Origin: Paragordius varius
Lineage: Eukaryota; Animalia; Nematomorpha
Direction of reading: 5' to 3'
Length of the DNA stretch: 64,000 nt
Assembly: GCA_964247055.1 (NCBI GenBank)
Contig: OZ176055.1
Coordinates: 7,812,001 to 7,876,000, forward strand
The notes beneath the pieces are model-generated. The model had not been told where the DNA came from, made no database searches, and saw only the letters and a list, made by a program, of their open reading frames with translations. Positions 3,001 through 53,124 of this stretch are shown one piece after another. The translations under genes were made by a program, and so were the position numbers. Each line of letters opens with the position of its first letter. The stretch's first letter is position 1.

Positions 3001-6000
3001 TAAATTGGAAGCCCATTTAAACACCATCCGATAAAAATAAGCATTTAGATTCTAAACTATTTTTACTGTAAACTATCAAAATTTGTCCTAAATATTTTAG
3101 GACATTCAAATTATTTTATATTATGTGAGCCAAATTTGTAATCTTTTATTATTTTAATTTTTTAATCTAGTATCCCAAAATAAATTATCTACACCTAATA
3201 ATAAAATAATTTATGCTTCTCTTTTAAAATTATATGCGTCATGAATAAGAAATTAAGATATTGAAATACTTTAGTGTTACTCCATTCTGACTCTTGATCG
3301 GATAGTTTGCGGGCTAATTGTTCATTCATAACTTTTAAATCTTTAAGATATTTTTCCAAATTGTCCCGCTCTGATATTATGTCTTCAACTTGTTTTTTGA
3401 TTTTTTTCAATGACTCCAACTAATTGCAACAAATATATTTAATTTAAAGATCATGATATAATAATGAAATTTCGCTAAAACAAAAATTATAAAATCACCA
3501 TACTTCAATATAAGACTAGAAAAGAAACGGCAAAAAAATGTTAACCTCTGCGAATGATCATCTTTTAACTGGCTTCCCAATCAAAAGCAACATTTTTTCA
3601 AGCAAACGCAACGTTTCAAGCAACGACTGAAAAAATATTGCGTTTGCTTGAAAAAAATGTTGCGTTTGCTTGAATATAGAATGCGTTTTCTTGATAAAAT
3701 GTTTTTCTCTTTGAAAAAATGTTGCTTTTCTTGAAAAATTGTTGCGTTTGGTTAAAAAATGTTGCGTTTGCTTGAAAATGTGTTCCTTTTGACTGAAAAA
3801 TGGTATATATATCTTTGGCAAAATATCCTAAAGCTTAGTTTTTTGCATGTTTCACATGGAATGGAAAATATATAAAAATGATTTTCACATTAAATAAAAT
3901 ATTAAGTAATAGGTATTTTAAAATACAGATCGATTTAGTATTATTTCACATTTGATTAATTGGATCGACATAAAGTTATTTTATTTAATAACCATTATAT
4001 TATCAAATATATAACATATTTGCGGTATTCCAAATATGGGAAAATGGGTCTAATTTTTTTGCTAGAAAAACTAAAGGCACCATACTAAAGTGTGAACTAA
4101 ATGAAATATGGATAGTGTCGTATTGTTTTTTTAAGCAAATCTTAAAATTCTGTTATAATATACCTCTTTTAGGCTATCATCATGTTGGTTTTGTAAAGAT
4201 TGATATTTTGTCTGAATTTGACAATATTCATTTTTAACACTTTGCAATTGTTTCTCCGTTTGGAATAGCTTATAAATTAACTCATGATTCTAGCACAAAA
4301 ATATATATTAAAAAAATGGGGACGACGCTTTTGGTTTTGGGTCCTAAGCAAAAAAGGCGGTTAAAATGATGCTTTGTGGGGAAAATGTTTGTGGTTTCAG
4401 CTCCATATATAATTTTATATATTTAAATTTTGATTAGAAAGCTCATAAAAGCGGTTAGAACATAAACAATTAATAAAATTTAATATTTGTGAATTTATTT
4501 TTTAAATTTAATAATAGTATATAAACAGTTTTCACAATAAAGTTGTTGAAAGTTAAAAAAAACTTTAAGCTGGTTTGGGTTCCAGTTTCCAAGTAAAAAT
4601 TAAAATTTAAAAACTAACTTTTCTGCCAGCCAAAGTTGGATCAAGGCTTTCGTCCGAACTCAAAGAGCTTGCACTATTGCTATTTGCTTGGGACAAAGGA
4701 AATTCACATTTATTACTATTATTAGCAGTAAGTTTGCCATTAATGGTATTTATTAATTTTTCAGCAACACTTAGAGTAGTACTCCGTGGTTTATCTCTAC
4801 TTTCATTGGTTAATTCTCTAATTTCCGGTCGTTTTTTAAAGCTTACACTTTTGTTGACATAATCTTTTGATTTTACCATATCAGAATCAGATATATTATC
4901 CTTGTTATTTGCATAATTGGGGTTAGTATTATCATATTCGATATTATTCAGCATTGAGTTTTCCCAATCATTACAACCATTCATTGCTGATACCTCTTTA
5001 GCGTTCCCATTTAATTTAGATTTTTGGTGCCTGCTGTTTTTACCATATCCGTTCAATGTTTTAATCACCGGTTCTCCCCCTTGTCCAATGTTAGACAAGT
5101 GATTTTGCAAGCTTTCATTTTCGTTTTCTAGTTCCAGGATTCGACTTCTTAGAAGCATTTCTTTTTGTTGGCATTCGTAAAGTGTTCGATCAATTTCGTG
5201 TTCGGCAGTTTTAATTTTTTCTAACAAAACCTCTTGCGAATTGTTTTTGTCGGTTAAAGGGCTTGTTGTAACCATCGTAATTTTATTATCAATATTGTTG
5301 ATATCGGAATCTAAAAATGTTAGAAAAATATTTTATATTTAGTTTGCATATATGATGTTTGTTTTTAACCAAGGGATACCTCGTTATACTTTTTAGATGT
5401 ATTCCCGTGCCTCTGATAATTTAAACAAATGCATTGCGTAAATTTTGGCTTAAACTTCATTAATTAAAAAATTTATAGTTTGTATGGCTCAAATAGAATT
5501 TATTTCATAATATTATTACCTTAAATTATTAGGTGTGTTGATAAATTTAATATGCCATATTTCAGCAAAACCTCAAAAAAGTATTTTATAATTTAATATA
5601 TATGTAACTACATTGGGTCATTAACTAATACGTGCCTAAGAAATACACAAAAAATAAGTTAAATCTTATTTCATATTTTAAAAAAATACTGATGATCATC
5701 CAGGTTTTCATTTTAGTTTTTTGCATTTATTTCTTTTATTTGGCTTTTAATTCCCATTTTTCTCTGATTCTGACATCCATTATTTAAAAAATCTCACAAA
5801 CATACAAACGGTACCCAAAATTTGACAACAAAAAAATATTCAAATTAATTTAGAAGTTTAGATTAAGAACCGAAAAGATTATACATAAGGACAAAAATGC
5901 ATAGACTACACCATTTACAATTCAAATTCACCCTTGAACAATTCAAATTTACTCTAAAATTTAATCAAGTGTTTTCGGGCTAATATAACTTATCTTTAAA

Positions 6001-10907: not shown

Positions 10908-13900
10908 CACTAGTCAACAAGGTTTTGCACCACCCCATTATTTTTGTGTTTTCAGATACCTAATATCATGGAAAGGCCAAAACAAAAAAAAATTTGAGGC
11001 CACCAATAGGAATTTTCCAAAATTTAATTTTCAAATTTGTATTTAATTTAAAAAAAACAATCATTCCTCGTGTACATATGTTTAAATATTCAAACGAGCA
11101 AGTCGATACAAGTAATATTCTAGAGCCAGGTATTTTCATTATAATTTTAGTACGAAAATGCAAAAATGATCCAAATAAATTTTGCATCTGTTGTGTTAAA
11201 TATAAATTTAAGAAAAATAATTTGCGGAATATTGATGTTATTACTGGAAAACTTTTTACAAAATATTTTGATACCAAAATTGATAATGACAGAGCATGGG
11301 CCCCCCAAAAAATATGCGACGCATGCCGAATCCTTTTGCACGGTTGGAAGAATCATAAAAATATAATGCCATTTTCCGTACCCATGATATGGCGTATCCC
11401 ATCAAATCATGATCAAGGTTCCCATAACATATATTTTAGAGTGCTATTTTTGTCTTTTTGATAATTTCAAAGCTTTTCGAGCAAAGCGATATAAAAAACC
11501 AATTGTTTACCCCGATGTACCTACCGCTATTAAACCAGTACCAAATGATCCAAATATACCAGCCCCAGTATACGATGCCACAGATGATATTTTTATTGAC
11601 GAAGACTCTACAGAAAATGTTATTGATGATCCATTAAATAAAACTTTATCTGAAAATGCCGTTGATCTTTATATTAAAAAATATAAACTGCCTAAAAATG
11701 CTGCTGAAGGGTTATTATCTCTTTTGCATGAGACAAACGTTATATCAAGCGGGAACGTTACTCGACATAGAAATAGACAATCGAAAATTTCTAAATTTTT
11801 TACGGAACTTGATAAAATTATCCACTGCAATGATATAAAAGGATTAATGGAGGAGCTTAATACTTCCTACAATCCTGAAGATTGGGCTCTTTTCGTGGAT
11901 AATATGGTTTTACTCTTATATATAATATTTAAAAGCTGAGTTTGAAGATGATATTACTCCATAAAACTAATGCCAAGAAACCAGTGGTTATTGTATATGG
12001 CCGAAAATGTAAAGAATCTTACCAAGTTTTTAAAGATACACTGGAAAAAATATCTTACAAAACTCATGGTTGGAATGTTGTGGGTGATTTTAAAGTAAAA
12101 TCCGTGATATATTTTAGGTTTTATAAATGCTGGCAGGTCTTCAGGGTGGATTCCCTAAATACCACTGCTTGTTCTGTCTATGGAATAGCAGAATGAGGCA
12201 CCAGCATTATGTAAAGAAGGGCTGGGGTGCTCGAAGTTATCTGATTGGAAATTTCAATCAAATTTTGGAGCCCCTTATAAATATTGAAAAAATATACATC
12301 CCTCCTCTGCATATATTGCTGGGAATTTTTTCAATATTTATAAAGAATCTTGAAAAAGATTCGGAGTCTTTTATTTATTTTCACAACCATTATAATCTCA
12401 GCAAAGCCAAAGCTGAGGCTGGGGTTGCTAATGGCCCATTAATCAAAAAAATTTTTGAAGATAAATCTTTTTTAAACTTATTATCTATAAAAGAAAAAAA
12501 AGGCTTTTGAAGCTTTAAAAAAATTCAACAGTGGTTTTTTAGGTATAATATATTTTTAAATATTAGGTTCACATAAGTCAAAAAATTATAAAATATTCGC
12601 TCAGGAGCTTGTAGAGAGTCATCGGATGGGTATATTATTTCATAAAATGTAGGCTGTAATATGACCATGAAGCTACACGTAATACATGAACATATCGAAA
12701 AATTCCCGCTCAATAACATTAGCGATCAAGTAGGCGAGCGTATGCATCAAGATATAAAAAGATTTGAAGCAAGATACAACGCGCGAAACAATATTAACAT
12801 GATTTCTGATTTTATCTGGAATTTTAATGCCACATAATTATTATTTTAAATATATACAATAAATAAATATTCATTTTATTGAATATATTAATTAAAAATT
12901 TGTAAAGATAATGTATATATTGAGAATAATTTTAATATCTATTTATACAATTTTTTGTGGAAGTACTACAAAGATATACGATTAAATGAATATATAGACT
13001 ATAATCAACACTAAAATTTGTACAAAAAATTATTTGCATGAATAACAAAATTCTAGGCATTAAATAAGATTCTAAACAAGCTAAGAGCCAAAGTATTAAA
13101 AATCTAAAAGGGCTTATTTATAGTGTAATAGATCCGGGCGGCTGCACAAGCTCTGCATATCCCCAAGCGATCCTATAATATGCCACATATGGCAAAGATA
13201 ACAATAAGTAATCAGCCCGATAAGAGAGACTTGCAAGCAAAATCCAAGCAAATTGACATGTCAAATTAACCAATTCACAGAATAAAGTTTGATAAATTCA
13301 ACAATTAAATCGAAAAAATAGATTAGGTAAATACAAATGGTCCGATTCCATAACAGTAAATTCTACTAAAAGTGGCTACACAACATCCATCTGAAATTCA
13401 AAAATAAAACAACCAATAAATTTAAAAAATACAGTATATCCCCTAGGAACAAATAAAGGATTTTTTGTAAAAATCAACTCAAAAGTAAAGCCTAATAACT
13501 ACTCGAAAGAACGAAAATAACAAAAAAAATATAGCCTATCTAAAAGCCGAAGGTTTAAACCATGGAATGCCTTTTTTAGTATTTTTTTAAAAAATTTTTA
13601 TACGTATTAAAAATTCACTTGAAGGAAAAAGGCGGAATTTTGGCGTTTAAGTCCGTACTATTTTTTTCTCTCTGATATTTAAATGACATATTTATATTCA
13701 AAAGATAGAGTTTAAAACGCTTTATTAAATGATATTAAGTTTATAATATAATAACATTTTATTATAAAGTTATTTTTGATTTTCTCTCGATTTTCTCTTG
13801 TTTTTGAAAAATTGAAAAACCTATAATATTTCAAAATTCTGATTGGCGGGATCAAAAATTTTTTCAGATTCGGTTTGAGAACACTGAAATCAGTCATAAT

Positions 13901-15269: not shown

Positions 15270-18200
15270 ATGGGTGTTGATAATACAAAAAAATACGGTG
15301 GTAATAATCATAATTCAATACTTGCGCATGATTATTTATCTACTTCGCGAACCTGTGACATAAAATCATTTTTGAATTCAGATAGATGTGATGAAAGCGA
15401 CAAAAAATTAGTAAAGTTTTCTGATCTATCACTATCAAAGTTAACATATGATAGTCTCCAAGCTTGTGGATTCGAATATTTAACTCCGATACAGAAACTT
15501 GCCATACCTCTTGGTCGTTTTGGCTTGGATTTGATTGTACAATCAAAAGCTGGAACTGGGAAAACATGCGTGTTTGGAACTATTGCCTTAGAAACTATTA
15601 CTTATGAATGCAAATTACCTCAGGTTAGTTGTTAAAATTTAATTTTATTAATTATTATGTATCATTTAAATTATTTCTAATTATAGGTTCTAATACTAGT
15701 ACCAACTAAGGAAATTGCTTTCCAGATTAAATTGTCTCTAATGCGCTTGGGTCAATGCTATAAATCGCAAGGATTTAAAGTTGCGGCCTTTGTTGGAGGC
15801 TATCCCTTACCTTCTGAAAAACCTCAACCTTCTCTTTCAATCCCTTTAAACGAATTTTTTCTCAAAAATTCTACTGGTTCAACATCCGATATTATTGAAT
15901 ATGAATCATCTGAAAATAGTAGGCGAAAAGCGTCTCAAGACAAAATAAACCAAAAATTGGCTGAATTATATAACAGTCATATACTAATTGGGACACCAGG
16001 TAAAAGATATATGCACAATTAAATATTTTTCACCCTATTAATAATTTCATTAAATCTTTTGAGTAATATTTTAAAGAATTTCTAATGTTTTTTTTGGATA
16101 TCAACCATTGAATCATAATAGGTCGAATCAAACATCTCATATACCTCAAATATATTGACGTATCTAACATAAGTCTTCTTGTTATGGACGAAGTGGATCA
16201 AATTTTTAGGGTAAATAATTTTAATTCTGTTATTGTATTTTTTTGCCGGAATAAGTTTTGCGATGAATCAATATAAAAATTCTAATTTTTGTTTGCAATT
16301 ATTATGAAATACTTGAATAGTGTCACTTTTATATATCTCATTTTTAAGGTCAATGAGCAGGAGGTTATGGTTAATTGGATTTTTTCTACGCTTCCACCTG
16401 AACGTCAAATTATAACGACATCAGCTACTTATTCGTCTAGTCTTATACGTTTACTTAGTGATGAATACATGAATTCCCCCCAGATTTGTCAAATCTCATC
16501 TTCATTGCAAACAAATGCAAATCAAATCGCACTTGTTGATAATATGATGGCGAATGAAAACAGCCCAAAAACACTAAAAAATAATGATATAGATGACAAC
16601 ATTGAGGACAATTTTGATGACGAGATGACAGATTTGCCTGATGCCATATCTAACGTTCAATTACACGGTGTTCGACAATATATAGTGGATTTTTCAGATT
16701 CCCAATACTTGCACCATACAATTCATGCCAATTTAAACAGTGGCAAAAATGATAGCCCTCATCTTCAAGAAATTAACCATAATAAGCGTGTATCTTTTGA
16801 ACAAAAGTTAACCTATATTTGCGCTCTCCTGCAACATATAGCCTTTAAACAATGTTTTATATTCGTTAACCATGCTTTTAAACTCGAAGCCGTGGGCCAA
16901 AAACTTAAGAGTTATTTTGCAGCTCAAAATTACAGTAGTATTGAGAAGGATGGTGATACAAATGAAAATTACAAAAAACAACCTTTAATAATTAATGCAA
17001 GATGCTTATGTTCTCAACAGGTAAAAAGTTTTTTTTTTATAAATTTACTCCAAAAAAATTATTAAAATTGATAATCAGAGAGTAAAATAAAGTTTTAATA
17101 AATAGGGAGAGCAAATAAAATTTTAAATCGATAAAAATTTGATCCATAATTTTTATGTACATTTTTAACTTTTTAGGCCTTAATAAATTTAATAATCAAA
17201 TAATTTTAATTTAATCCATTTCTCCATTAATGCCTTATCGTTTATCAAGTTAGTTTTGTGATAAAGAATCATTTTCAAAGTATAACAAGGTTATAATACC
17301 ATAGTATATGTTTATTTTAATTCTAATTCCTTCTTACATCCCTTGATATTTTATTTAAATGTTTTTCTTTCATCTATTTAGCCCATACAAAAGCGTTTAG
17401 CAACTTTGAGAGATTTTGTATCTGGGAAATTTAAGGTTCTGATTTGCACAGATTTAGCGGCCCGTGGAATTGATATTCGATCAGCTGATTTGGTTATTAA
17501 TTTAGATGTTCCACTCCACCCTGATAAATATGTGCATCGTATAGGACGGTGTGGAAGGTATCATTGGAATTATATCGAGATTGTGGTTAAACATTTATTT
17601 TGATTTCGTTTCGTTTAATTTACTGTATTTTTAGTTTAATTTTTTCTTGCATAACTAAGTCCCGACGATGCCTTTGCTATATTCGGAGATTATAAATAAT
17701 TTATTTTTATTCCTTATTCACAACGTGTTTTGAATCTTAAGTTAAAATTCTATTGAAGAAATGTATTAGCATTTGAAAATATATTTTTTAACGTAAATTG
17801 TGGAAAGTACATTCAATTTTTTTATACTTTGGCAATTTAAAAAGACAATTTTTCAAAGTCAAACACTTTTGTATCCTTTAATTTATATAACTTAGTTATT
17901 AAATATCAAGTTGTAGATTTCTTAACCCTATATTAAATAATTTTAATCATAAAGGCAATATACAATATTAAGAATCTTAAACTAATGTATGCAAAAAATG
18001 ATAGACTTTAACTTTTTGAGTTGCGGCGACGCTTTTAAATAGTTAGAGAATAAATATTTTTTAAATATTTGATTTTAATTTCACTTACTGTTTTACACAA
18101 TTATTATTAAAAGTTTATATATGATAATCTTATAACCTAAATTTAATGTAAAATAAATGTAAATGATAAGGTTGAGTCGAAGAGATCGGTTATTAAATTA

Positions 18201-28100: not shown

Positions 28101-31100
28101 ATCAAGTCTGTATTAGCCGGGGTATTGCAATGACCAAATTCCACCAAAACGTTAAAATACCTATTTTTATGAAATATATTTCAAATTCACCCTTGAACAC
28201 TTCAAATTGACCCTTAAACAATTCAAATTCACCCTTGAACTATTCAAATTCACCTTAAAAATAAATTATGTGTTTTCGAACTAAAATAACTCATTATTAA
28301 TATAAAATATATTCTTTATAGCATAATTTTATATTTTCTCAGTATTCTATAAATTTTAAACGTAATTTCATTTTTTAAAAAATATAAAAAAGAGGTAATT
28401 TTTAATCTTAGGAAACATATAATTTAATTTAAGGCGAATTTGAATTGTTCAAGGGTGAATTTAAATTGTTTAAGGGTGAATCTGAACTGTAAATGGTGTA
28501 TAAATATAAACAACTTAAATTTAAAACAATATTATTTTAGCATTGTATTATACATTAAAATTTCGGCTTCGAGTGCGTAATTTGACAAAAAATTATAATA
28601 TAGCCAACTTTTATACGCATAATCTTATAAACTCCCAATAAAATCGAAATTATTTTTAATAAATGCATTTTTTATACATATTTGCAAATAATTATTAAAT
28701 GCTATTTAAATTAATATATTTTTGGATAGAGTTGACGCTAAAACTTTGTTGTAACAATTTATCAACTATTAAATTTGAATAATTTCGATTCATAAATTTT
28801 TACATTATATAAATAAAAATAGAAATTTCAAAATCAAAATTACAAAATATTGTCACAATTTAATCGAAAAAAAAAGAAAAGAAAAAAAAACCATTCAAAA
28901 TCAGAGATGTATTGATAATTATTTTGGCGACAAACATCAATTATGTTACGGATAAGGTCATCTCTATAGGCCTGTGAAAATTCTTCAGTAAATCCAGCAT
29001 TTGTATTATTTGTATTCATATTATTGAGACTGACATTAAAATTTGAATTCTCATTCTTAATATTAATATCTATGTTAGGATTAACAAATATATCTGTAGT
29101 TTCATTATTCATATTCATATTATGATCCTTAATGATTTTATTTGGCACCAACTTTTGATCCAAGTGAGCTAAGAGTGTTTTAACTATTTCCATCAAATTT
29201 TTTTTGGTTACCTGTAGGGCAAATAAAAGTATTTAATTACATGAAAAATAGTTTATATATTTTAGAATATGATATAATATCAGCAAAATTAATAATAAAT
29301 TTATTAGTGAATTTTCGTTAGATTCATCTAACTTCTTTAGATCAACATAAAAATAAAATTAAAATAAAGATACAAAATAAAATTATAAAATATTTTATAA
29401 AAATAAAGATGTATATCTATTTATATATTAAAATTCAAAAAAATATGAAAAAGGGGCGTAAAATTCTAAAATACAGTATGCATTTTAATGTATGCTCAAT
29501 AATTTTATTGGCAGTCGAATAACATAAATGGTTTATCCAATGCGTAAAATACTGACCCACGAAATTATTTCGTAGTACACATATGAAAGAGGATTGACGT
29601 GAGAATTAACATAGGCTTTAATTTGATGGATATTTTGTAATGTTAAATTTTCAGAAGATTATAGCAATTTATGTTAACATTTGAAATATTGTTGTTACGT
29701 ATATAGATGCGGAATTTTGTGGGTTTTTGTCTTTGATAAATTAATAAATAGTAATATACGTATTTTAAAATTTTTAATGTCAATTATTCCTAAATTTAAT
29801 AATAAATATTTTTCAACATGCTAAATACCTGTATTAATCAATATTGGTATTATCATTTTATATAGTTGTTACTACTAATTAAAAAAACACAGGTAAATAT
29901 ATATTTGTGAAAATTTAAGTAGATTTAAATTTTTTGTCTTTTATGTTTTGCAATGTTAATTATTAATAAGTTTAAGTATTTCAGACATTTTAATCAGGTA
30001 AAAATTCGGTTTTGAAATTTAGTAAAATTTAATTTTTTTTGTTTTTTTATGTAACATTGTTAATTGTAAATTAGAACATATTTTGGACATTTTAATAAAT
30101 ACAGGTAAAAATTGCGGTTTTAAATTACTTTAGTAAAAATTTAGTTTTTTTTGTTTTTTAGGTTTTGCATTGTTAATTTTAATTAATTACTACATATTTT
30201 GGACATTATAATAAATACAGGTAAAAATTTCGGTTTTTAACAAATTTAGTAAAAATTAGTTTTTTTATGTTTTGCATTGTTAATTGTAATTAATTACTGC
30301 ATATTTTGGACATTATAATAAATACAGGTATAAATTGCGGTTTTTAACAAATTTAATAAAAATTTAGTTTTTTTTTTGTTTTTTTATATTTTGCATTGTT
30401 AATTGTAATTAATTACTATATATTTTGGACATTATAATAAATACAGGTAAAAATTGCGGTTTTTAACAAATTTAGTAAAAATTTATTTTTTTTGTTTTTT
30501 TAGGTTTTGCATTGTTAATTGTAATTAATTACTGCATATTTTGGACATTATAATTAATACAGGTAAAAATTTCGGTTTTTAACAAATTTAGTAAAAATTA
30601 GTTTTTTTATGTTTTGCATTGTTAATTGTAATTAATTACTGCATATTTTGGACATTATAATAAATACAGGTATAAATTGCGGTTTTTAACAAATTTAATA
30701 AAAATTTAGTTTTTTTTTTGTTTTTTTATATTTTGCATTGTTAATTGTAATTAATTACTATATATTTTGGACATTATAATAAATACAGGTAAAAATTGCG
30801 GTTTTTAACAAATTTAGTAAAAATTTATTTTTTTTGTTTTTTTAGGTTTTGCATTGTTAATTGTAATTAATTACTGCATATTTTGGACATTATAATTAAT
30901 ACAGGTAAAAATTTCGGTTTTTAACAAATTTAGTAAAAATTAGTTTTTTTATGTTTTGCATTGTTAATTGTAATTAATTACTGCATATTTTGGACATTAT
31001 AATAAATACAGGTATAAATTGCGGTTTTTAACAAATTTAATAAAAATTTAGTTTTTTTTTTGTTTTTTTATATTTTGCATTGTTAATTGTAATTAATTAC

Positions 31101-34100
31101 TATATATTTTGGACATTATAATAAATACAGGTAAAAATTGCGGTTTTTAACAAATTTAGTAAAAATTTAGTTTTTTTGTTTTTTGCATTGTAAATTATAC
31201 ATAGTCTTGAAATATTTTTTACATAATATAATAAAGACAGATAAAAATCAATGTTTTTCGGTTTTATATGTAATTTTAAATACCAACCAATATGAAAAAT
31301 TTTCTATATTCACATAAACATCGATATATAGATGCAAATAAAATATATTTATTACTCCAAAAACTATGAATAAGAAGCATATTATTTTTAAATATAAATA
31401 AATTTATCTATATAAAATACTAGCGTACTCGTGCTGCTGCGCAGCACGAGGAAGTACTTCGGACTTCTGGGGGGGGGGGGGGGGGGCTATTTGAAATAAG
31501 GGACAATAAAATGATCCACATATGTGGATTATTTCGAAACATTCTTTAAATATGATTTTATAGGAATTTTAAAACGGTGCATTCATACAAATATATTGTT
31601 TACTTGGGGAAAAAAATACAATCAAAAAATTATTTTTGTGGACTTTTTTTGAAAAAAATGGGATTTTACTGGGGTAGCGGGTAAAAAGAGGGCCTAAATC
31701 AAAAAAGTGAGTCGACTATGTTCAGTGCGATCAAAAATAAGTAAACAAAAATCATATTTGAAATTGAATGGTCCAACACGTTCTCCAAAAAATTGACTTA
31801 ACCCATTTTTCACACGGGGTGGGTCCAAACTGGGGACCTATTCCAAAAAAGGGCGAAGCTATTGTCGGGACATTTATTAATGATTAAATTTTTTCGATAT
31901 TCGGATTTTATTGGGTTCACCGGTTTTCCGGAAACATATCACAAAGTTACATGAGGAATCAGTTTTTAGCGGGTAGCTCCTTACCCAGCAGCTATCATCA
32001 AAGAAACGTTGGACTAAAATTTTTGCTTTAATATTGAATTTTTACGGTTTCATACCTAGGGCGAAAAATCGATTTAAAAAATTATTTTTGTGGACTTTGT
32101 TTTTTGAAAAAGGTGGCATTTTACGGGGGGAGCGGGTAAAACGAGGGCCTAAATCAAAAAAGTGAGTCGACTATGTTCCGTGCGATCAAAAATAAGTAAA
32201 CAAAATCATATTTGAAATTGAATGGTCCAACGCGTTCTCCGGAAAATTGTCTCAAAGACACGATTTTTGTGAACTTCTGTTTTCAAAAAAACCGTTTTTC
32301 ATATGGGGTGGGCCCGAACTGGGGGCCTATTTCAAAAAAAGGGAGAAGCTATTGTCGGGGCATTCATTATTGAATATATTTTTTCGAAGTTTGGATTTGA
32401 TTGGGTCTACCGGTTTTCCTGTACCAGATCACAAAGCCAGCATTTTCCATTTTTATAAATATATAGATATCATTATAATATAAATCATAATTCAATGTTG
32501 GAATCATCCAGCTTTATGGTCGATCTATATCATCATTGTCATTGACCGTCTTGTATGTTAGATTTGCTACAATTTAATGATTAATATCATCAATTATTAT
32601 AATAGGACAGTTGAATTTTGAAAACTCTGATTGCAATAGTGTGGGATCTTATTATCAGAACATTATAATTTATACACTTGTTCGTTCTTTATAATCCCGG
32701 TGATCATCTAAATAAAAAAAGATTATTGGGGTTTTTTAAAAATTATAATGCTATCTCTTTTTTATGAACATAGCTGTCACAATCCTAAATAGTGTTGGGA
32801 GCTAACACATTCTCATTGTTAGAATCCCCTATTTAATACAAAAATAATTTACCTTTAAAATGACTTTTTTCATTATAAAAAAAATTAAAAATGATCTTTT
32901 CACAGTTTTCTTTTACATTTTCTTTTTAGCAACCAAAACAGCACGAAAAATTCCCTACACTGCTTTTCTGGCATGGTATGAGTGCGAAGAAGAAAATTTT
33001 ATCAAATTTGTATTTTTTGTTAAGACTATGAAGGGGATTCGTGTTTTTTTAGTTTTGGCTATTATAAAGAAAATGCAGATGGAAGAATTTATAACATTTT
33101 TTATTTTCTTTTTTATAAAAAAATATTTTTCCAATTTGAAGGTTAATTTATTTTTTATTTTAATTGGTGTTAGCTCCGATTAGCGTTTCTGATTGTGATA
33201 ATATTTATGGAATTCAGGAAAGCGATTGTAGGAACAGTAATATCATTTTAAATTCCATAAAAACTCATCTATCTTTTATGTTAGCTGATATAATCATCCC
33301 AGAGAATGATGGTAAAATATTCTTAATTTTATCCACGTTTTTCAATGATCTTTTGGATGATAAATTGAGTCTTTTATCAGGTATTTTTATTAGATTTTAT
33401 AAAAAAGAGATGGTGATTATAATTTTTAAAAACCCAATAATTTTTTTTATTTAGATGATCACCGGGATTATAAAGAACGAACAAGTGTATAAATTATAAT
33501 GTTACTGATAATAAGATCCCACACTATTGCAATCAGAGTTTTCAAAATTCAATTGTCCTATTATAATAATTGATGATCTTAATCATTATGTAGCAAATCT
33601 AACATACAAGACGGTCAATGACAATGATAATATAGATCGACCATAAAGCTGGATGATTCCAACATTGAATTATGATTTATATTATAATGATTTATTATAT
33701 ATAAATAAATTTATTTATGTCTAAAAATAATATGCTTCTTTTTCATAGGTTTTGGAGTAATAAATATATTTTATTTGCATCTATATATCGATGTTTATGT
33801 GAATATAGAAAATATTGGTTGGTATTTATAATTACATATAAAACCGAAAACATTGATTTTTATCTGTCTTTATTATAGTATGTAAAAAATATTTCAAGAC
33901 TATGTATAATTTACAATGCAAAAAACAAAAAAACTAAATTTTTACTAAATTTATTAAAAACCGCATTTTTTTACCTGTATTTATTATAATGTCCAAAATA
34001 TGCAGTAATTAATTACAATTAACAATGCAAAACATAAAAAAACTAATTTTTACTAAATTTGTTAAAAACTGAAATTTTTACCTGTATTAATTATAATGTC

Positions 34101-37100
34101 CAAAATATGCAGTAATTAATTACAATTAACAATGCAAAACCTAAAAAAACAAAAAAAATAAATTTTTACTAAATTTGTTAAAAACCGCAATTTTTACCTG
34201 TATTTATTATAATGTCCAAAATATGTAGTAATTAATTAAAATTAACAATGCAAAACCAAAAAAACAAAAAAAACTAAATTTTTACTCAAGTAATTTAAAA
34301 CCGCAATTTTTACCTATATTTATTAAAATGTCCAAAATATGTTCTAATAGATTACAATTAACAATGTTACATAAAAAAACAAAAAAAATTAAATTTTACT
34401 AAATTTAAAAACCGAATTTTTACCTGATTAAAATGTCTGAAATACTTGAAAATTATTAATAATTAACATTGCAAAACATAAAAGACAAAAATTTTAAATC
34501 TACTCAAATTTTCACAAATATATATTTATGTGTTTTTTTAATTAGTAGTAACAACTATATAAAATTATAATACCAATATTGATTAATACAGTTATTTAGC
34601 ATGTTGAAAAATATTTATTATTAAATTTAGGAATAATTGACATTAAAAATCTTAAAATACTTATTTTACTATTTATTAATTTATCAAAGATAAAAACCCA
34701 CAAAATTCCGCATCTAAATACGTAACAACAATATTTCAAATGTTAACATAAATTGCTATAATATTCTCAAAATTTAACATTACAAAATATCCATCAAATT
34801 ACAGTATGCATTTTAATGTCTGTTAAGTAATTTTATTGCCTGCCAAATAACATAAATGGTTTATCAAAAGCGTAAAATACTGACCCACGAAATTATTTCG
34901 TAGTACACATATGAAAGAAGATTGACGTGAGAATTAACATAGGCTTTAATTTGATGGATATTTTGTAATGTTAAATTTTGGGAATATTATAGCAATTTAT
35001 GTTAACATTTGTAATATTGTTGTTACGTATTTAGATGCGGAATTTTGTGGGTTTTTATCTTTGATAAATTAATAAATAGTAAAATACGTATTTTAAGATA
35101 TTTTATGTTAATTATTCCTAAATTTAATAATAAATATTTTTTTAACATGCTAAATACCTGTATTAATTAATCTTGGTATTATAATTTTATATAGTTGTTA
35201 TTACTAATTAAAAAAACACAGGTAAATATATATTTGTGAAAATTTAAGTAGATTTTTGTCTTTTATGTTTTGCATTATTTTTATCAGGCAAAAATTGCGG
35301 TTTTTAATAAATTTCCTAAAAATTTAGTTTTTTTTTGTTTTTTAGGTTTTGCATTGTTAGTTGTAATTAATTACTACATATTTTGGACATTATAATAAAT
35401 AGAGGTAAAAATTGCGGTTTTTAATAAATTTACTAAAAATTTAGTTTTTTAGGTTTTGCATTGTTAATTGTTACTACATATTTTGGACATTTTAATAATT
35501 ACAGGTAAAAATTGCGGTTTTTAACAAATTTAGTAAAAATTTTGTATTTTTTGTTTTTTTAGGTTTTGCAATGTTAATTGTAATTAACTACTACATATTT
35601 TGGACATTTTAATAATTACAGGTAAAAATTGCGGTTTTTAACAAATTCAGTAAAAATTTAGCTTTTTTTGTTTTTTTTAGGTTTTGCATTGTTAATTGTA
35701 ACTAACTACTGCATATTTTGGACATTATAATAATTACAAAATTTAGTAAAAAGTTAATATTTTTGTTTTAGAGGATTTTCATTGTTAATTGTAATTAATT
35801 AATTTTGGACATTTCAATTAATAAAGGTAAAAAATGAGGTTGTTTTAATATTTAATAAAATTTAATATTTTCTTGTTTTTTTATTTAATATTGTTAATTG
35901 TAATTAATTACTACATATTTGGAAATTTTAATAAATACAGGTGAAAATGGCGGTTTTTAACAAATTTCAAATGTAACATTTTTTGTATCTTGTATCATTG
36001 TTATTTAATTAATTACTAAATATGGACATTTAAAAAACTTGTGTAAATTGCGGTTTTTATTAAATTAGTAAATTTTATTTTTTGTTCAACCTTGCTAATT
36101 TATTTATCACTATATATTTGTGATACATTGATATATACAGGTAAAAATTACTATGACTTGCGGTTTTTTGAATTTTTTAAAATATTTTTTTTACATTGAT
36201 AACTTATATAATAAATATAGTTAACATATCTGAGTAAGTAAAAATGCATGTTACGGTTTTATGTTTGACATTTTATTTTCCATCAACTATTTATATTTTC
36301 CTGAAAATTTTAATTACCATCATTTTTCAGGTAGATTCTATCACCTAAAATATAAGATAATTGATATATTAGAAAATTGATACCTGGATTAAATATTGGG
36401 GGAAACATTCATAGTTTGAAAGGGAACTCAAAAGGTTGACTTGGCTTTTTAACAACTAAATTTGCAAAAAAATATTTTCTTCATGATAAAAATATCAAAA
36501 ATGATACCTTATTTTACGTTTTCGTTTTACCATCCTAAACTATAAATATAAAAAATTATTCTTCACCAAAGCAAACAATGTAAGTGTTGCCTGCTTTTGG
36601 AGTGCTGTTGCATTCCAAGCTTTTGAAAAAAATTATTTGTTTCTATTTTCTATTTGACGTCATTGGTATGGTGAAATCATATAAGCCTTTTCATATTTAT
36701 AGTTTAGGATGGTAAAACGAAAACGTAAAATAAGGTATCATTTTTGAATTTTTTATCATGAAGAAAATATTTTTTTGCAAATTTAGTTGTTAAAAAGCCA
36801 AGTCAACCTTTTGAGTTTCCTTTCAAACTATGAATGTTTCCCCCAATATTTCCAGGTATCAATTTTCTAATAATCAATTATCTTATATTTTAGGTGATAG
36901 AATCTACCTAAAAAATGATGGTGATAAAAATTTCAGGATTATCTACATCTTATACTATTCTTCAATCCATATGATCATCATGAACGCACACCGCATCGTA
37001 CATCAATTATATAAACAAATTACCTGTATTAATATCAATAAGAAGAATGTTAATTTCAAACATAATATGAATATTTTGTATAATTATACATTTATAATTT

Positions 37101-40100
37101 AAATAAATTTATTTATATTTGGCGATATTCAGATACTTTAAAAGATGTTTTATATATCTTGATCTTATTTTCAATCTTTGGTGACATAAGTTGTTTGTTA
37201 AAATATAAATAGTTGATGGAAAATAAAATGTCAAACATAAAACCGTAACATGCATTTTTACCTACTCAGATATGTTAACTATATTTAATATATAAGTTAT
37301 CAATGTAAAAAAAATATTTTAAAAAATTCAAAAAACCGTAAGTCATAGTAATTTTTACCTGTATATATCAATGTATCACAAATATATAGTGATAAATATA
37401 TTAGCAAGGTTGAACAAAAAATAAAATTTACTAATTTAATAAAAACCGCAATTTACACAAGTTTTTTAAATGTCCAAAATATTTAGTAATTAATTAAATA
37501 ACAATGATACAAGATACAAAAAATGTTACATTTGAAATTTGTTAAAAACCGCCATTTTCACCTGTATATTTATTAAAATTTCCAAATATGTAGTAATTAA
37601 TTACAATTAACAATATTAAATAAAAAAACAAGAAAATATTAAATTTTATTAAATATTAAAACAACCTCATTTTTTACCTTTATTAATTGAAATGTCCAAA
37701 ATTAATTAATTACAATTAACAATGAAAATCCTCTAAAACAAAAATATTAACTTTTTACTAAATTTTGTAATTATTATAATGTCCAAAATATGCAGTAGTT
37801 AGTTACAATTAACAATGCAAAACCTAAAAAAAACAAAAAAAGCTAAATTTTTACTGAATTTGTTAAAAACCGCAATTTTTACCTGTAATTATTAAAATGT
37901 CCAAAATATGTAGTAGTTAATTACAATTAACAATGCAAAACCTAAAAAAACAAAAAAAACAAAATTTTTACTAAATTTGTTAAAAACCGCAATTTTTACC
38001 TGATAAAAATAATGCTAAACATAAAAGACAAAATTCTACTTAAATTTTCACAAATATATATTTACCTGTGTTTTTTTAATTAGTAATAACAACTATATAA
38101 AATTTTAATACCAAGATTAATTAATACAGGTATTTAGCATGTTGAAAAATATTTATTATTAAATTTAGGAATAATTAACATAAAATATCTTAAAATACGT
38201 ATTTTACTATTTATTAATTTATCAAAGATAAAAACCCACAAAATTCCGCATCTAAATACGTAACAACAATATTACAAATGTTAACATAAATTGCTATAAT
38301 ATTCCCAAAATTTAACATTACAAAATATCCATCAAATTAAAGCCTATGTTAATTCTCACGTCAATCTTCTTTCATATGTGTACTACGAAATAATTTCGTG
38401 GGTCAGTATTTTACGCTTTTGATAAACCATTTATGTTATTTGGCAGGCAATAAAATTACTTAACAGACATTAAAATGCATACTGTAAATGTATAATGAAA
38501 TTAAAACTAAACTACTGTTTTTTATAAAGAGAAGTCGCAAAATTTTTAGGTGGCTAAAAGATTAGGTATGCAAAATTGGAGGTATTAAAAATATATTTCT
38601 TCACAATCCATATTCAAAAATAGAAGCTTAAAATTAGAAATTAATACCTATAATATATAAAATTTGAATCAAGGTTATAAAGAAAAGCATTAGGAATGTA
38701 TATATATTTAATTTTATACCATTACCCAATTTTTTAAAAAAAATATCGTTAAGTTTTTAGGCAAACGTCTTGGACTGGAAAATGTTGTAAAATGAAATAA
38801 AATAATATTAAAATGCGTGATTCTCTCAATCCTTAGAATTAATATTCATTAATCTTTCATAAATCACCACCAAAGTTTCACAAACAAAATTTAATATAAT
38901 TCTTTTCGAATTATCTTAAATTTTAGTGTAAATCCCGGGAAAAATGGGTAAAATAAAAAAATCTAATTTTTTCAATTTTACAGTAAAAACCGAATTTATA
39001 CGGACAAAACGTAAAAAATAAACGCAAATATCTTTTTCCAAAAGACAACCATACTTTTTAAACCCTAAAAATTTTTCTTATATAAATTAAATAAGTACGA
39101 TTGTAAAATATATAATTGATTGTGTCACCAATATATAACATAATTTTATGTTTGCAATTTAAAACAATGAGTTATATTTCAAAAAAATGAAGTTTAAAAA
39201 AGTATGGTTAGGTTGTCTTTTAGAAAAAACTAATATTTTACATTTTTTTGTCCGTGTAAATTTAATTTCTAAAAAAAAGAAATAACCATTCCATATAGTA
39301 AATGTAGAGCACGTCTCCGTATAGAATCATCTTTGTGTTCAGTTAAACAACTAAGCACAATATCTTTATGAGCTTGAACGCTTTTAGGATAACACTTGAG
39401 GATTTTACCCATGGCTAGTAATCCCAAATATTTTACTATAGATAATAATGAAATTGGAAAAGGAATTAAGGTTAAATTAAAAAAAAATGTTAAATTTTAT
39501 AAAATTAATGTTAAATTTGAAAAATGTTAAGTTTTATATAATTAATGTTAAATTTGAAAAATGTTAAACAATTTCAATTATTTTTTTTGAAACAAAAGGT
39601 TTAAAAATATTCAATATTATTTTTGAAAAATGAATAAATTTTTTTTAAAAAATTTACCAGCATGCGCAAAAAAATTAATAAATTTATGAAAAAAAGTAAA
39701 TTTATGATAAATAAAAAATATATATTTTATTTAATATCAAATAATAAAAATGTTATTGGTTTACTATAAATTATCAAAGGATGCTAGTACCAAAATATTT
39801 TGAAATATTTTTATGGAAAAAAAATATATTTTACAATTCTGGTCATTGTCTTCTATAAGGATTCGTAGCTTCTGTAAGCACAGCTAAATTATTATAAAAC
39901 AAATTTAAAATCAAATTTAAAATAATAAATTTTATTTATTAAAAAATCTTAAAAAAAGCCTGTTACCTGAATAGAGGCCGAATGATCGATGGAACTATCA
40001 CCGTTTGAAATGCTGACTAATACTAAAAAAATTAAAAAAATATATACTTTTGAATCTTTTGAAAAATAATATTAAATTTAAAGTTTAAATAAAAAAGAGA

Positions 40101-43100
40101 GGAAAAATTTAAAAATTTTACCTGACAAAAGTGTGTTTATGCATTCATATAAAAGGGACATGGCCGATGTGCTATAGGAAAAAATATCAAATATAAATAT
40201 TAAAACAAAAAAATTCAACTAAAAAAATAAAATACATTAAACAATAAAAATATTAAAAAACAGATTTTTTGATTTATAAATCAATTATTTTTATTTATAA
40301 ATACATAATTCCTTACAGAATCAGTTATAAGAAACATAGATACCTGTGTATAAGATTTGTTAGAGGTTCCAACAATTTTTTGCCTAAACGCGGTTCTATT
40401 GGAGTTAAATTACCAAACTAATGCGAAAAAATCATTTATTATCAATAATTAAATATAAATGAAAATAATATTTTCAGAAAAAATTATTAGCTAAATATTA
40501 TAAAAAATACCATAAAAAAATTTATAATAAAATATATTTAAAAATAACTAAATCCATATAATAAATAAGATACTTTTTTAATATATAAAAATCGAAAAAA
40601 AAAATAAAAAAACATTAAAAAGTAAAACAAAAAAAAGAATATTAATTTGATTAAAAACAATAAAAAAATTTAATACAATAAAAAATTTAAAACAATACCC
40701 AAAATTAACTAATTTTCATCAAATATATTCAAAAGATAAAAAAAATAAAAAAAAAGGTAAATAAAAATACCAATTTAATAATTTTAATCAACATCCAATT
40801 GTTGGTAGAATGCGTCATAAGCTTAAAGAAAAGTGGAGATAGTCCAATGTAATTTGCAGGATTTCGTTTAGCCATTTCACAAATCACATTTACCGCTGCG
40901 CTTTGGACACCTAAATAATTAAATAGATATTTTTTAAATAAAAAATAGTTAACAAAATAATTGAAAAATTATGAGATTAATAAAATTTAAATAAAAAATT
41001 ATAGTTTAAACTATTTATGGAGTTACAATTTCTTATTTTTACGAATAGATTTTTTATTTTTTAGACAAAAATAGATAAACTCAAAAGTTTTAATTAAAAT
41101 TTATAAAAAAAATGTTTTTACAAAAAAAATTCGCACAAATTTCATTCATTTGTTTTAATTAAAATTATTCTTTTGTGCCATATTCGCAAAATACTTAATT
41201 ATTAATATATCCTATCTTGAAATAAAATTTTGCCGGTACCGCATTGTTTTACATCAAAAAAAAAATAAAATATATTAGATTTTATGCAGAATTTATTATA
41301 ATTAGCTAACTTTGATCAGAATCCTCTAATTTTTCGCGCATTTTATTAAATGCGCTTTCCAAGCATTCGGGATATTGTAAAAATATTTTATACATCATAA
41401 GGATGGCTCGTTTTCGGACATAGGGTTTGGTTGAAGACATCTAACATTAAAAAGGTAAAAGTATTTTTACAACAAACGTATTTTAAAAATTTAACCAATT
41501 TAAGTTGGTTTTACAAAGTAATTTCAAAAGTTAAAAAAAGTAAATTAAAAACAAAATGTTGTATTAATTGTTTTCGCTTAGTTATATTTTTACGCAAGTT
41601 TCGAATAAATAAATTCGATTTGGTTGAATCCACACAACTCCAATTAATTTATTAAAATTTAACACACTTAATTCTAGATAAAATTGAAACACGAAAATTT
41701 ACAAGAGTGAATAAAACAATAAAAAATATTTTTAAAGATAAAAAAATCTACATATTAAAAAAAATAGTTTTAAAAAATTTTAAAAACCAAAAAAAATTTA
41801 CCAAAGCAATAACATCTGTACATAAATCTCGGGCTAAATCACTCGTGACAAAACATGAGAGGCCGGAAAGGGCCATGCCCGATTCGTATTGGTTATGACT
41901 GTTTATGTCCTAAAAATCATGTAAAAAATCAAAAATAAAAATAATCAATATATAATATAGTATTTTATTATTAATTGAATATATATTAGTATTAATATAA
42001 ATGTTGAAAATTTCTTATACATAAATTTTTAAAAATTAAAGACATCATATTAGTTATAATGTAAGCAATCTTATTAATAGTATGCCCTAAAAATTAAAAA
42101 ATAAAGTTTAGAATTCAAAAATGATATTTAGGCATTTATACAAAAAAATTTTATTTTATCAAAATACTAATTTTAACTATGGAAACATAATGCCTATAGA
42201 AAAATATTTAGTCTGAACCATATAACTAGTTCCAATACTGGACAACAAATTTTTCTGCCACTCGAGTTTTTTGAATTTTCTGATAGTATCATTTTAACAG
42301 TAAATCTGAAATAAAAATTATAACTCGATGGAAGAATTTTGTAAAATTTGATTTTTTTGATTATGCGCCCTATTTATAAAAATTTTACTAAAAAATATTT
42401 TTCTTCGAAAATATACAAGTAATGCCCATTTGTTATAATATCATTCGAAAGAGCAATAAAAACTCTATAAAATGCATAACAATATGTATTACATCGACAA
42501 TTTATATTGGACTCAAAGAGCGACAAACGCTCGAAGCGAGAGCATTTTTTTTAATTATTATATTTTTAAAACTAATGGATGAAAATAGCTTAAACTTTGT
42601 TTAGATGGTGATGAATGTCCAAAAAAGATAACACAAGAAAGTTTTTTTGATTAAAACATTTTTTTATTGCTTTTATGTCACTCAAAACAGCCATTTTTAA
42701 GTTTTTTGTTTTTTTAAAAATTACCATCTCATCAATATTAATTTATTTTCTTTACAAGGCTGATAATTTCAAAATTTTAAAGGTAAAAACAAAGCTTAAG
42801 GTATTTTTGATCTTTTATAGCCATTATGTAATAAATTTACAGTAATAACTATGCATTTTAGTATCCACTAGGTATAATATTTATAATAATAATTTTTATT
42901 AAAAAAGCAAACCAAAAGCTTTTTCAAACATTTTTTTCAATTAAATACTAATATAACCCTAATAATTATATTAAAAAAATTTATATGATCTTGACTTATT
43001 TAAGGATTGAAAATTTCGACCATTTAAATCCAAATAACTTTTACTCAGATTGATTTAAATGACTTACTACCATTTAAAAGATGCAGTTTTTTGCGCTCTT

Positions 43101-43934
43101 TCAAATGATATAAAATACATGGCTTCATATCTAAAACTTTTAATTTACGAAATTTAGAGTTTAATGTTAAATCGGGGCCAAAAATTATCGATAAACTCTA
43201 ATATATAAAAATTCTTCCATGCTAGACCAATTTTCTTTTCAGATATACTAATTATGTACTTTAATGAAATAAATTTTAAATTTACAAGAATGGCAGTTAA
43301 AAAAAGTTAAAATTTGTTGTCTAATGTAATTGAACTAAAAAAATAAAAGACATTATTTTTCAGTATATGCTATTAAAAATTTAAAAAATTATGTAAAAAG
43401 TTGGCTGTAAAATTGTATTTCCGAATATATAAATAAATAGTCGCACCTTTTTTATAATATTGGTAGCAAGCATGAGAACGTCCAACTTATCGTGAAAACT
43501 CTGTGCGGCTGCCAAATATGCTATACGCTAATAATTAAAATTAGCAATTATAATTAAATTTAAATTTTAAAAATATGAAATGATTGTGTTACTTTGTGGA
43601 CAAATTTAACTGAGCTCATAACTTCTATGATGTTGAAGGCGGCCCAGTGTACATTATATCCAATCATATTCAGCTAAAAATTTAATTTATCTTATACGTA
43701 AATAAGTTTCGCAATTGCCATTGCTTTTACAGTCATATTGTCTTGTCTTAATTCATTTTTGATCTCATCCAAACATTGTGTTATAAATTTGGACTAATTT
43801 TTAAAATAATCATTAAATTAAACTTCATTTTCCTTATTATTTCGAATACCGCGTATCATATCACTAAGATTCTTCTCAAAAAGCTTGTCAATATTATCTT
43901 TGACTCGTTTAATAATAATATTTTCGGGATTCAT
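20260..43934 (-). CDS. AP3D1: AP-3 complex subunit delta-1, more than 20 exons
   Basis: ATG at 43934 (MNPENIIIKRVKDNIDKLFEKNLSDMIRGIRNNKENE), then SKFITQCLDEIKNELRQD, WAAFNIIEVMSS, RIAYLAAAQSF, LARDL, TKPYVRKRA, GVQSAAVNVICE, TNNWMLIKIIKL, EPRLGKKL, STSAMSLLYEC, QKLRILIED, KYLGLLAM, YRDDLIRNII...DFEWY, ICGEYS, NNPHYLK, all collinear with AP3D1. Last exons (20496-20549, 20260-20368) are less certain. Confidence 0.95.
22985..23019. repeat. (AT)n microsatellite
   Basis: Perfect run in an AP3D1 intron. Confidence 0.95.
24857..25186. repeat. Cluster of three microsatellites: (AT)n, (TA)n and compound (TA)n(TG)n
   Basis: Runs at 24857-24888, 24948-24973 and 25141-25186 within one intron. Confidence 0.95.
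26713..27207. mobile_element. MITE family D, 495 bp
   Basis: TA|CCTTTTGGGGTAG..TATATCCCGGAGC and GCTCTGGGATATA..TACCCCAAAAGG|TA are imperfect inverted repeats; an inverted second copy lies at about 58525-58880. Confidence 0.65.
28174..28498. mobile_element. MITE family B
   Basis: About four left and three right 21-bp units; right end CTGTAAATGGTG|TA; left terminus eroded. Confidence 0.85.
29990..31190. repeat. About 114-bp tandem array with a 342-bp three-monomer higher-order repeat
   Basis: The variant GTAAAAATTTCGG recurs at 30221, 30563 and 30905 (period 342) with two other fixed variants in between. Confidence 0.9.
31420..32467 (-). mobile_element. Non-autonomous Helitron, 1048 bp
   Basis: On the - strand: A|TCTATATATTTATAAAAATGG start, a 10-bp GC-rich hairpin (31428-31450), then CTAG|T end, no TSD. 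Absent from the opposite foldback arm. Two internal direct repeats at about 31624-31945 and 32076-32435. Confidence 0.88.
34802..38484. mobile_element. Foldback element 2, 3683 bp, TA-flanked
   Basis: TA|CAGTATGCATTTTAATG ... CATTAAAATGCATACTG|TA; arms about 34802-36550 and 36690-38484 around a spacer of about 140 bp; the same 114-bp monomers; inner arms differ from element 1. Confidence 0.9.
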
Positions 43935-51356: not shown

Positions 51357-51900
51357 TAATAAATCAAGAAGGAGTATAGATAGTTAGTCTACCGAGTTGC
51401 AGGTTGGATATATCAGTATACCCTAATTAGCATCAGAGACTATGAGAAACCAAATTTTGTTGACAGTGTTTACCACGTGTCATAGTGTGAGACGCGTTTC
51501 GTCCTTTTTGTGGACTCATCAGCCACACATAATGAACACGGGTAAACACTGTCACTTCAGGAATTGTATATAAATTGAGTTTTGATTGAAACCGAATAGA
51601 GTCGGGGAAATAAATATTATAGAGCTTAGAGTCCATATTGGACAACCGATAATACCAAAATTCAACCAAATATTATGACTCCTTATAATCCTTAAGCTAG
51701 GATTAAGCTTTTTGTAATTAGAAAATCAAGAAACCAAATTTTGTAGACAGTGTTTATTTGGTTTCTCATAGTATCTGTTGCTAATTGATATACTAATATA
51801 TCCAACCTGCAACTCGGTAGACTAACTATCTATACTCCTTCTTGATTTATAACTTATAAGGAGATGGCGCCTACCGCCAAAAAATTTCTGAATTCCAGGA
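51357..51900 (-). mobile_element. 544-bp Penelope-like/retrozyme-type non-autonomous insertion inside the hAT transposase
   Basis: Exact 10-bp TSD ATTCAAATAA at 51347-51356 and 51901-51910; removal rejoins KKLTLFE|CHLKNNNAHFP. Contains an inverted pair of about 95 bp (from 51359 and ending 51850), a 28-bp direct repeat and a hammerhead ribozyme. Class assignment is inference. Confidence 0.75.
51462..51553 (-). ncRNA. Type I hammerhead ribozyme
   Basis: The - strand reads GUGUGG-CUGAUGA-GUCC-ACAAAAA-GGAC-GAAA-CGCG-UC-UCACAC: intact core, 4-bp stem II, minimal palindromic stem III, stem I extended by GACAGUGUUUACC/GGUAAACACUGUC. Predicted cleavage after GUC, between 51491 and 51490. Confidence 0.92.
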
Positions 51901-53124
51901 ATTCAAATAACGTCAATTTTTTACAAAGCGCTTTAATATGGTTCATCAACAATCAAATTATCTTGCTTTTGCAAGGATTCATTTAATTGATTTAGTTTTT
52001 CGGTAATATCTACGGAAAAGCATAAATCTGACAACCAATCTTCATTGGTTAATTCCTCTACCAAATAATTATTCTGCAATAGAAAAATTTTTATTTCTTT
52101 TAATTAATAATAAAACCTTTTTAGACATTTCCCTAGACTAAGCCACCTTACATTTGAAAAAAATATAAGATCTCCATATTCTGAATGATTTTTTAATAAC
52201 TTAAACTGCCTATGATTCAAAGCATGAAATTTTATAAAATTAACTACTTTAATAACAACGGTCATAACATTGTCCATTGTCAGAGCATGTGCGCAGAGAT
52301 TTTCACAGTGAATCATGCTATGCATTATATATATGGTCAATATTAATACCATCGGATTCCATCTTATTTAACAATAATTTCACGGTTCCCTTGTTTTTTC
52401 CCATCATAGCTGGGGCACCATCTGTTGTCAAACATGATAGCCCCCTCATATTTATTTTATTGTCCTCAATGCATTTTAAATTGCATGAAACATATCATCT
52501 CCCTTAGTTGTATTTTTCATCGGAAGTAAGCCTAACATATCTCCTGTTATATTAAAAAATTCATCTATCCCTCGAATAAAGACTACCAATTGTGATATGT
52601 TGCTTACATCTGTGCTTTCATCAAATGACAAGGAAAACGCCACAAAATTTTAAATTCTTTCTTTTAGGGAAAGTTAAATTTTTTCTGCGATGTCTGTAAT
52701 TCGTCGACGCTGTGTATTGCGCGAAAGACTTATACTGGATATTAATTCAACTTTATTAGGCAAAACACATTTTATTATTTCCAGTACGCATTCCTTTACA
52801 AACTCATCATCAGAATAAGGCTTCATTTTTTTGGCGTGGCAACAATATAACTTGCCCTTACTGTCGGATAAGGTGTGAATGAAATTGTTGGTTGGAGATT
52901 ATTAATATTTTTTAAAGATTCTAATTTTATATTTTCATTTCTGTAGTTATATTAATAAAATCCAAATGCATGGTATTGGCATGTCTTTTTAAATTATATT
53001 CGCGAAACCCGTTTGTCGTAAATTTGCAAATAAGGCGCTCCGCTTTGTTGAAAATTTGAGAAAACCCATATTTTAATTCTCAGTCGGGATTGTATTTAGT
53101 TACTATTTTAGATTTATGCATATT

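Follow-up and report, generated by a model that had tools for sequence, protein, structure and literature searches.

Predicted 22- to 36-nucleotide introns near the starts of conserved genes that also carry ordinary and kilobase introns, in a genome related to horsehair worms

The window, by which the entire analysed stretch of 64,000 nucleotides is meant, has a G+C content of 25% throughout. It contains the AP3D1 (AP-3 delta) gene on the minus strand, with its start codon ATG at 43934, and a DDX20-like DEAD-box helicase gene on the plus strand (Table 1; window coordinates are used unless another contig or locus is named). AP3D1 is the only gene that was resolved without breaks, and this was accomplished through intron 12. 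Its exons up to residue ~440 are all intact and show 50–88% identity to one orthologue. Tiny introns account for only 2 of the ~13 introns resolved in this gene, and apart from introns 1 to 3 and intron 12 the resolved ones measure about 80 to 1,537 nt. The lengths of the early introns of the other conserved genes are included in Table 1.

Table 1. Features of the AP3D1 and DDX20-like genes in the window, and lengths of early introns in other conserved genes of the assembly.
Feature	Position	Strand	Description
AP3D1 exon 1	43824..43934	-	37 codons, C-terminal end NNKENE; residues 8-37 = AP3D1 chain residues 3-32
AP3D1 intron 1	43794..43823	-	30 nt, GT..AG, phase 0; second codon is an in-frame TAA
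AP3D1 exon 2	43698..43793	-	32 codons, SKFI..KLIY; Adaptin_N positions 3-32; residues 2-32 = chain 34-64
AP3D1 intron 2	43674..43697	-	24 nt, GT..AG, phase 0; second codon TAA in frame, TAG at end
AP3D1 exon 3	43593..43673	-	27 codons, LNMIG...; residues 1-27 = chain 65-91; Adaptin_N 35-59
AP3D1 intron 3	43528..43592	-	65 nt; 55-75 nt class
AP3D1 exon 4	43447..43527	-	tblastn, P0116 residues 74-106
AP3D1 intron 4	41910..43446	-	1,537 nt
AP3D1 exon 12	39287..39436	-	ends ..LHLLYGM; Adaptin_N 285-330; P0116 residues 300-349 by tblastn
AP3D1 intron 12	29212..39286	-	10,075 nt; donor GTAATT after ..YGM; acceptor ..CTACAG before VTKKNLMEIVK; repeated elements within
AP3D1 exon 13	28888..29211	-	start firm, 3' end approximate; ORF and tblastn, P0116 residues 370-399
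DDX20-like DEAD-box helicase gene	15270-17065	+	118-codon first exon
AP beta gene			tiny introns of 30 and 24 nt
gamma-COP			tiny introns of 27, 24 and 30 nt
CCT3 (CCT3-like)			early introns of 27, 28 and 36 nt
TCP1-alpha			early introns of 24 nt, then 71 and 73 nt
CCT4			early introns of 25 and 26 nt
CCT6			early introns of 23 and 23 nt
CCT8			early intron of 29 nt
PSMB4			early introns of 25 and 27 nt
PSMA3			early introns of 23 and 28 nt
PSMB2			early introns of 24 and 23 nt
PSMB3			early intron of 23 nt, directly after ATG
PSMA1			early introns of 31 (directly after ATG), 27 and 31 nt, then 64 nt
PSMA2			early introns of 25 and 28 nt
PSMB7			early introns of 22 and 22 nt

The anatomy of the AP3D1 gene start was established exon by exon. 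The exons were each searched individually by reference. When compared with the PDB by phmmer, exons 1 to 3 followed solved AP3D1 chains residue for residue, with none missing and none in excess. The independent orthologue P0116 spanned introns 1 and 2 in a tblastn search as gaps of 10 and 8 codons that contain stops, and the Pfam family Adaptin_N matched the exons in the correct order. For a random segment of the same composition, the probability of a GT start together with an AG end is p = 0.0023, and for both AP3D1 segments it is 5e-6. By these sequence tests both segments act as obligatory introns, the excision of which from the RNA we infer. A preliminary description of this DNA had reported two GT-AG introns of 30 and 24 nt, each with an in-frame TAA, whose removal gives a continuous protein, alongside a 10,075-nt intron in the same gene; the PDB chains and the tblastn alignment of P0116 confirmed the former, and the latter was recovered at full length between exons 12 and 13. 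The long intron holds, at 31400–32500, a repeat with near-identical open reading frames (..GERVGPFNFKYDFCLLIFDRTEHSRLTFLI.., beside proline runs). About three copies of the same repeat were found in an intron region of more than 2.3 kb in the AP beta gene (locus L044, minus strand, oriented coordinates 4880–5850). The GERVGPFNFKYDFCLLIFDRTEHSRLTFLI repeat is probably a dispersed transposable element that enlarges long introns.

The age of the two tiny introns was assessed from the borders of exon 2. A protein search with this exon gave a best identity of 74%, and many of the matches were short open reading frames on genomic contigs of other animals. In these reading frames the homology sets in directly behind a Q (CAG) that marks the first border (..Q|AKYI), and at the second border it ends with ..KLTY, after which comes a V (GTx). 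At this second border, the site of intron 2, an in-frame insert of 54 nt is present in one sequence, P0046. Because the homology breaks off at both borders and P0046 has an insert at one of them, the positions of introns 1 and 2 are ancestral and common to other animals. Judged on these alignments, the two tiny introns are best described as two ancient phase-0 introns that have shrunk, rather than as insertions.

Further tiny introns were first traced through in-frame stops inside HMM matches of other adaptin genes, a procedure that can register only lengths divisible by three. For eight CCT and eight proteasome genes, the 5' parts were then read by eye in three frames. In all, the genome sequence read comprised 15 gene regions together with the loci recovered by three family searches and by the U2 search. 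The resulting sample comprises 30 GT-AG introns of 22–36 nt in 19 genes (the two of AP3D1 and 28 in 18 other conserved genes). Tiny introns were present in 19 of the 24 conserved genes of which the 5' part was read, and these genes are distributed across seven contigs. In the parts read of CCT2 (55, 61 nt), CCT5 (61 nt), CCT7 (57 nt) and PSMA5 (55 nt), and likewise of the DDX20-like gene in the window (64, 121 and ~138 nt), a tiny intron was absent. The class is common, not universal.

Since 17 of the 30 tiny introns have lengths that are not multiples of three, their removal is required to keep the reading frame. For the frame-shifting cases in CCT genes, the flanking open reading frames matched consecutive positions of the Pfam family Cpn60_TCP1 (1–21/18–53, 18–39/39–108 and 1–20/16–70); the paired matches sit in different frames, 23–28 nt apart. 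Of the 13 tiny introns with lengths divisible by three, 11 contain an in-frame stop, roughly as composition predicts. The two stop-free cases, the third intron of gamma-COP (30 nt; locus L048, 803–832, plus strand) and the first of PSMB2 (24 nt; locus L058, minus strand, oriented 1586–1609), were recognized solely by orthologue spacing. Kept in the RNA, these two would lengthen the protein by 10 or 8 residues and leave it otherwise unbroken; they are candidates for alternative splicing or silent retention. The excess of lengths divisible by three that was seen at first was an artefact of the in-frame HMM detection and disappeared after reading by eye; the lengths modulo 3 do not depart from an even distribution (13:10:7, p = 0.41). 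Open reading frames were also joined without any reference via GT..AG segments of 15–150 nt, with and without a codon-usage gate, and control dinucleotide pairs scored equally often.

A transposase gene at 10994–12840 of the window (plus strand) contains GT..AG introns of 22 nt (near 11418–11439) and 29 nt (near 11907–11935), at which the reading frame changes between long open frames; a mobile element thus carries tiny introns of the host type. In one proteasome alpha gene, the first visible exon (..IRGKDVIVLG..) has a partial upstream copy (locus L057, 1171–1215 versus 1511–1560, plus strand), the surroundings of which are very AT-rich and resemble tandem repeats.

The tiny introns are confined to the starts of genes in the material read. 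All 24 for which the ATG is known lie at nucleotides 3–254 of the CDS (codon ≤ 85). Within the early zone (approximately the first 125 codons) 30 tiny and 17 longer introns were counted, and none of 42 downstream introns was tiny (Fisher p = 9e-12), a contrast that is overstated to the extent that introns identified between adjacent Pfam matches form a sample in which tiny introns flanked by very short exons would go unseen. The downstream set (n = 42, 67–10,075 nt) was composed of 33 such introns (67–1,446 nt) and of AP3D1 introns 4–12. AP3D1 itself, which was resolved continuously, shows the same 5' bias. Runs of two or three adjacent tiny introns occur in 11 genes.

Over the ~89 introns measured, the lengths fall into groups of 22–36 nt, 55–75 nt, and 100 nt or more (up to 10,075 nt), with none at 37–54 nt; most measured introns have 170–1,500 nt, and some reach 10 kb. 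Tiny and 55–75-nt introns have the same ends and occur in the same genes. A hAT/ZBED-like transposase fragment in the window (52100–52510, minus strand) also contains an intron of the second length class (55 nt, GT..AG, 52318–52372). The preliminary description had proposed two intron size classes separated by a gap at 31–62 nt and served by one spliceosome. In the sample of ~89 introns the lengths are multi-modal, and a distinct ultra-short class exists genome-wide; the number of classes has to be raised to at least three, the shortest of them position-dependent. The gap holds within AP3D1 but not across the genome, where introns of 31, 31, 36, 55, 55, 57 and 61 nt were read, so that the empty zone narrows to ~37–54 nt. 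As tiny introns occur in the same genes as introns of hundreds of nucleotides up to 10,075 nt, one splicing apparatus must serve both, which agrees with the earlier proposal, although flatworms (below) provide a precedent.

The tiny introns have a length of 22–36 nt with a median of 25.5 nt (n = 30); 24 of them are shorter than 30 nt, the minimum being 22 nt. Their G+C content is 16%. GT and AG ends are present in 30 of 30. The 5' side reads approximately AAG|GTW with little beyond it, and the 3' side has a weak consensus in which A is most frequent at -7 to -9 and T at -6 to -3, followed by AG. In many of them TTAAT or CTAAT is found 8–13 nt from the 3' end; such motifs are expected by chance at 16% G+C and give weak evidence for a branch site.

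At least 35 U2 and at least 8 U1 snRNA genes scored above the Rfam gathering threshold in the genome, and the best U2 copy is canonical over its full length, including the GUAGUA branch-pairing box. The snRNA genes are clustered: dozens of U2 copies of graded quality lie on contig 3 (257000–530000), and a U1 cluster lies on contig 6 (565000–634000). Many of the clustered U1 and U2 copies fall under the gathering score and are likely pseudogenes. Within the window, no RNA family was detected by Rfam at gathering thresholds, including at 51462–51553, for which a hammerhead ribozyme had been proposed.

Three other explanations of the short segments were weighed. If the segments were kept in the RNA, AP3D1 would have to be a decaying pseudogene, or its stops would have to be read through or recoded. 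This is extremely unlikely, given that the exons of the gene are intact to residue ~440 with 50–88% identity to an orthologue, and that the inserts, with their GT and AG ends, contribute no sequence that orthologues possess. Moreover, such inserts shift the frame in single-copy essential genes (five CCT and seven proteasome subunits), where read-through would be no rescue. Equally unlikely is the view that no class exists and that the tiny introns are either a quirk of AP3D1 or mistakes in the assembly. The small share of tiny introns in AP3D1 itself (2 of ~13) would fit a peculiarity of this gene, but their presence in 19 of 24 conserved genes on seven contigs does not, and insertion errors in an assembly would not bear GT..AG ends at ancestral intron sites.

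The segments might also be removed by other means than the spliceosome, either by somatic DNA elimination similar to that of ciliate internal eliminated sequences, which have a similar size range, or by a protein endonuclease and ligase pathway. We regard this as very unlikely: all 30 segments have GT and AG at their ends, the start reading GTW and a T run preceding AG; their positions are shared with introns of other animals; canonical U1 and U2 snRNA genes have been retained in the genome; and the segments grade into introns of 55–75 nt that have the same ends and occur in the same genes.

The AP3D1 tiny introns are therefore read here, with a probability of roughly 0.9 and on the evidence of sequence, as genuine U2-type GT-AG spliceosomal introns, which would be shrunken ancestral introns belonging to a genome-wide 5' class. 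This reading builds on their anatomy, the colinearity with orthologues, the need for the frame to be restored, the recurrence in other genes, the bias towards gene starts and the U1 and U2 genes found. On this reading the class takes up the leading one to three introns of many housekeeping genes, inside the first ~85 codons, and introns further along these genes have 55–75 nt or hundreds to thousands of bases. In the mechanism proposed, tiny introns would be recognized across the intron (intron definition) by minimal signals, namely AAG|GTW, a putative A-rich branch region, frequently TTAAT or CTAAT, at ~7–13 nt from the 3' end, three to four T in a row, and AG. Removal would be accomplished by the ordinary spliceosome, with a U2 that carries the canonical GUAGUA branch-pairing box.

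The assembly comprises 110,561,105 bases in 44 pieces, among them pieces of 15.2, 15.2, 14.2 and 13.5 Mb, and is AT-rich. An intronless open reading frame for proteasome beta-6 showed 76% identity to Gordionus sp. (Nematomorpha) and at most 57% to all others. By this protein comparison no sequenced animal is closer than the horsehair worm Gordionus, which places the organism as an ecdysozoan near Nematomorpha. An assignment to the ctenophore Hormiphora californensis was rejected; the spliced leader of that species, which occurs 718 times in its genome, had no match in the present one. Published nematomorph genomes have 200–300 Mb, compared with ~110 Mb here. In the searchable literature no paper on intron size in nematomorphs or in ctenophores was found, and an earlier description may exist.

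Introns of comparable size are known from several lineages. Those of ciliates (Paramecium, Nyctotherus, Stentor) and nucleomorphs have 15–33 nt, are recognized by intron definition and carry minimal signals. Essentially all introns are tiny in these groups, whereas the tiny introns described here share transcripts with kilobase introns, and no bias of their lengths modulo 3 was seen (p = 0.41).

Among animals, a September 2026 survey of 51 genomes found introns of less than 30 bp only in myxobolid Myxozoa and in a dicyemid, and tied them to parasitism together with wholesale compaction (PMC13644364). The introns of Dicyema japonicum and of the myxobolids are similar to those described here in being GT-AG introns of 20–30 nt with signals of approximately GTa...AG, some A residues of weak conservation upstream of AG and a canonical U2 (PMC13644364). 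Dicyema, the myxobolids and the present lineage are all parasites. In Dicyema and the myxobolids, however, the median of all introns is 22–27 bp, whereas here the tiny class is restricted to the first ~85 codons. A majority of tiny introns as in Dicyemida and Myxobolidae was not found, none of the 42 downstream introns being tiny in what is a small and partly biased sample. Myxozoan proteins are also unlike the slowly evolving ones of the present genome, where an AP3D1 exon of 47 residues has 83% identity to P0116.

The closest parallel in layout is provided by flatworms, namely Gyrodactylus salaris, tapeworms, and flukes including Opisthorchis felineus. In Gyrodactylus salaris, intron lengths have modes at ~32 and 58 bp, the short mode is found at intron positions 1–2, and introns reach up to ~20 kb (PMC4040987). 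In Opisthorchis felineus, intron lengths peak at 37, 90 and 3000 bp, and the microintrons form clusters with a bias towards the 5' end (PMC6530080). The likeness thus extends to multi-modal lengths, a shortest mode at the first positions, clustering, and long introns in the same genes. These Neodermata, with modes of ~32–37 nt alongside introns of ~20 kb, also refute the statement, made in the preliminary description, that introns of such a size occur solely in lineages with generally tiny introns (PMC4040987, PMC6530080). The present case differs in its lineage near Nematomorpha and in its short mode, which is ~7–12 nt shorter (median 25.5 nt, from a sample of n = 30 and not a genome-wide census).

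The phenomenon is accordingly of a known kind, with a flatworm-like layout and sub-30-nt introns as in other animals; lineage and size are what differs. By hybrid architecture we mean that a promoter-proximal zone, approximately the first 250 nt of the CDS, contains ancestral introns collapsed to ~22–31 nt and is followed by ordinary and kilobase introns on the same transcript. We lean slightly towards the view that this lineage close to horsehair worms represents a further independent origin of sub-30-nt introns in animals, the first in Ecdysozoa, with such a hybrid architecture.

A practical consequence concerns annotation. Common aligners and gene finders interpret gaps of up to ~30 nt as deletions, or do not allow introns of this size. 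With the usual minimum intron length, many housekeeping genes of this genome and of its relatives will therefore be annotated with truncated or broken 5' ends, which a lower minimum would avoid.

The hybrid architecture, if true, would point to a splicing regime that depends on position and acts at the 5' end of transcripts, not to genome-wide compaction. The occurrence of tiny and 10-kb introns together would separate the question of the lower size limit of the spliceosome from that of why whole genomes shrink. It would further extend the microintron pattern of flatworms to Ecdysozoa, in a relative of another parasitic phylum.
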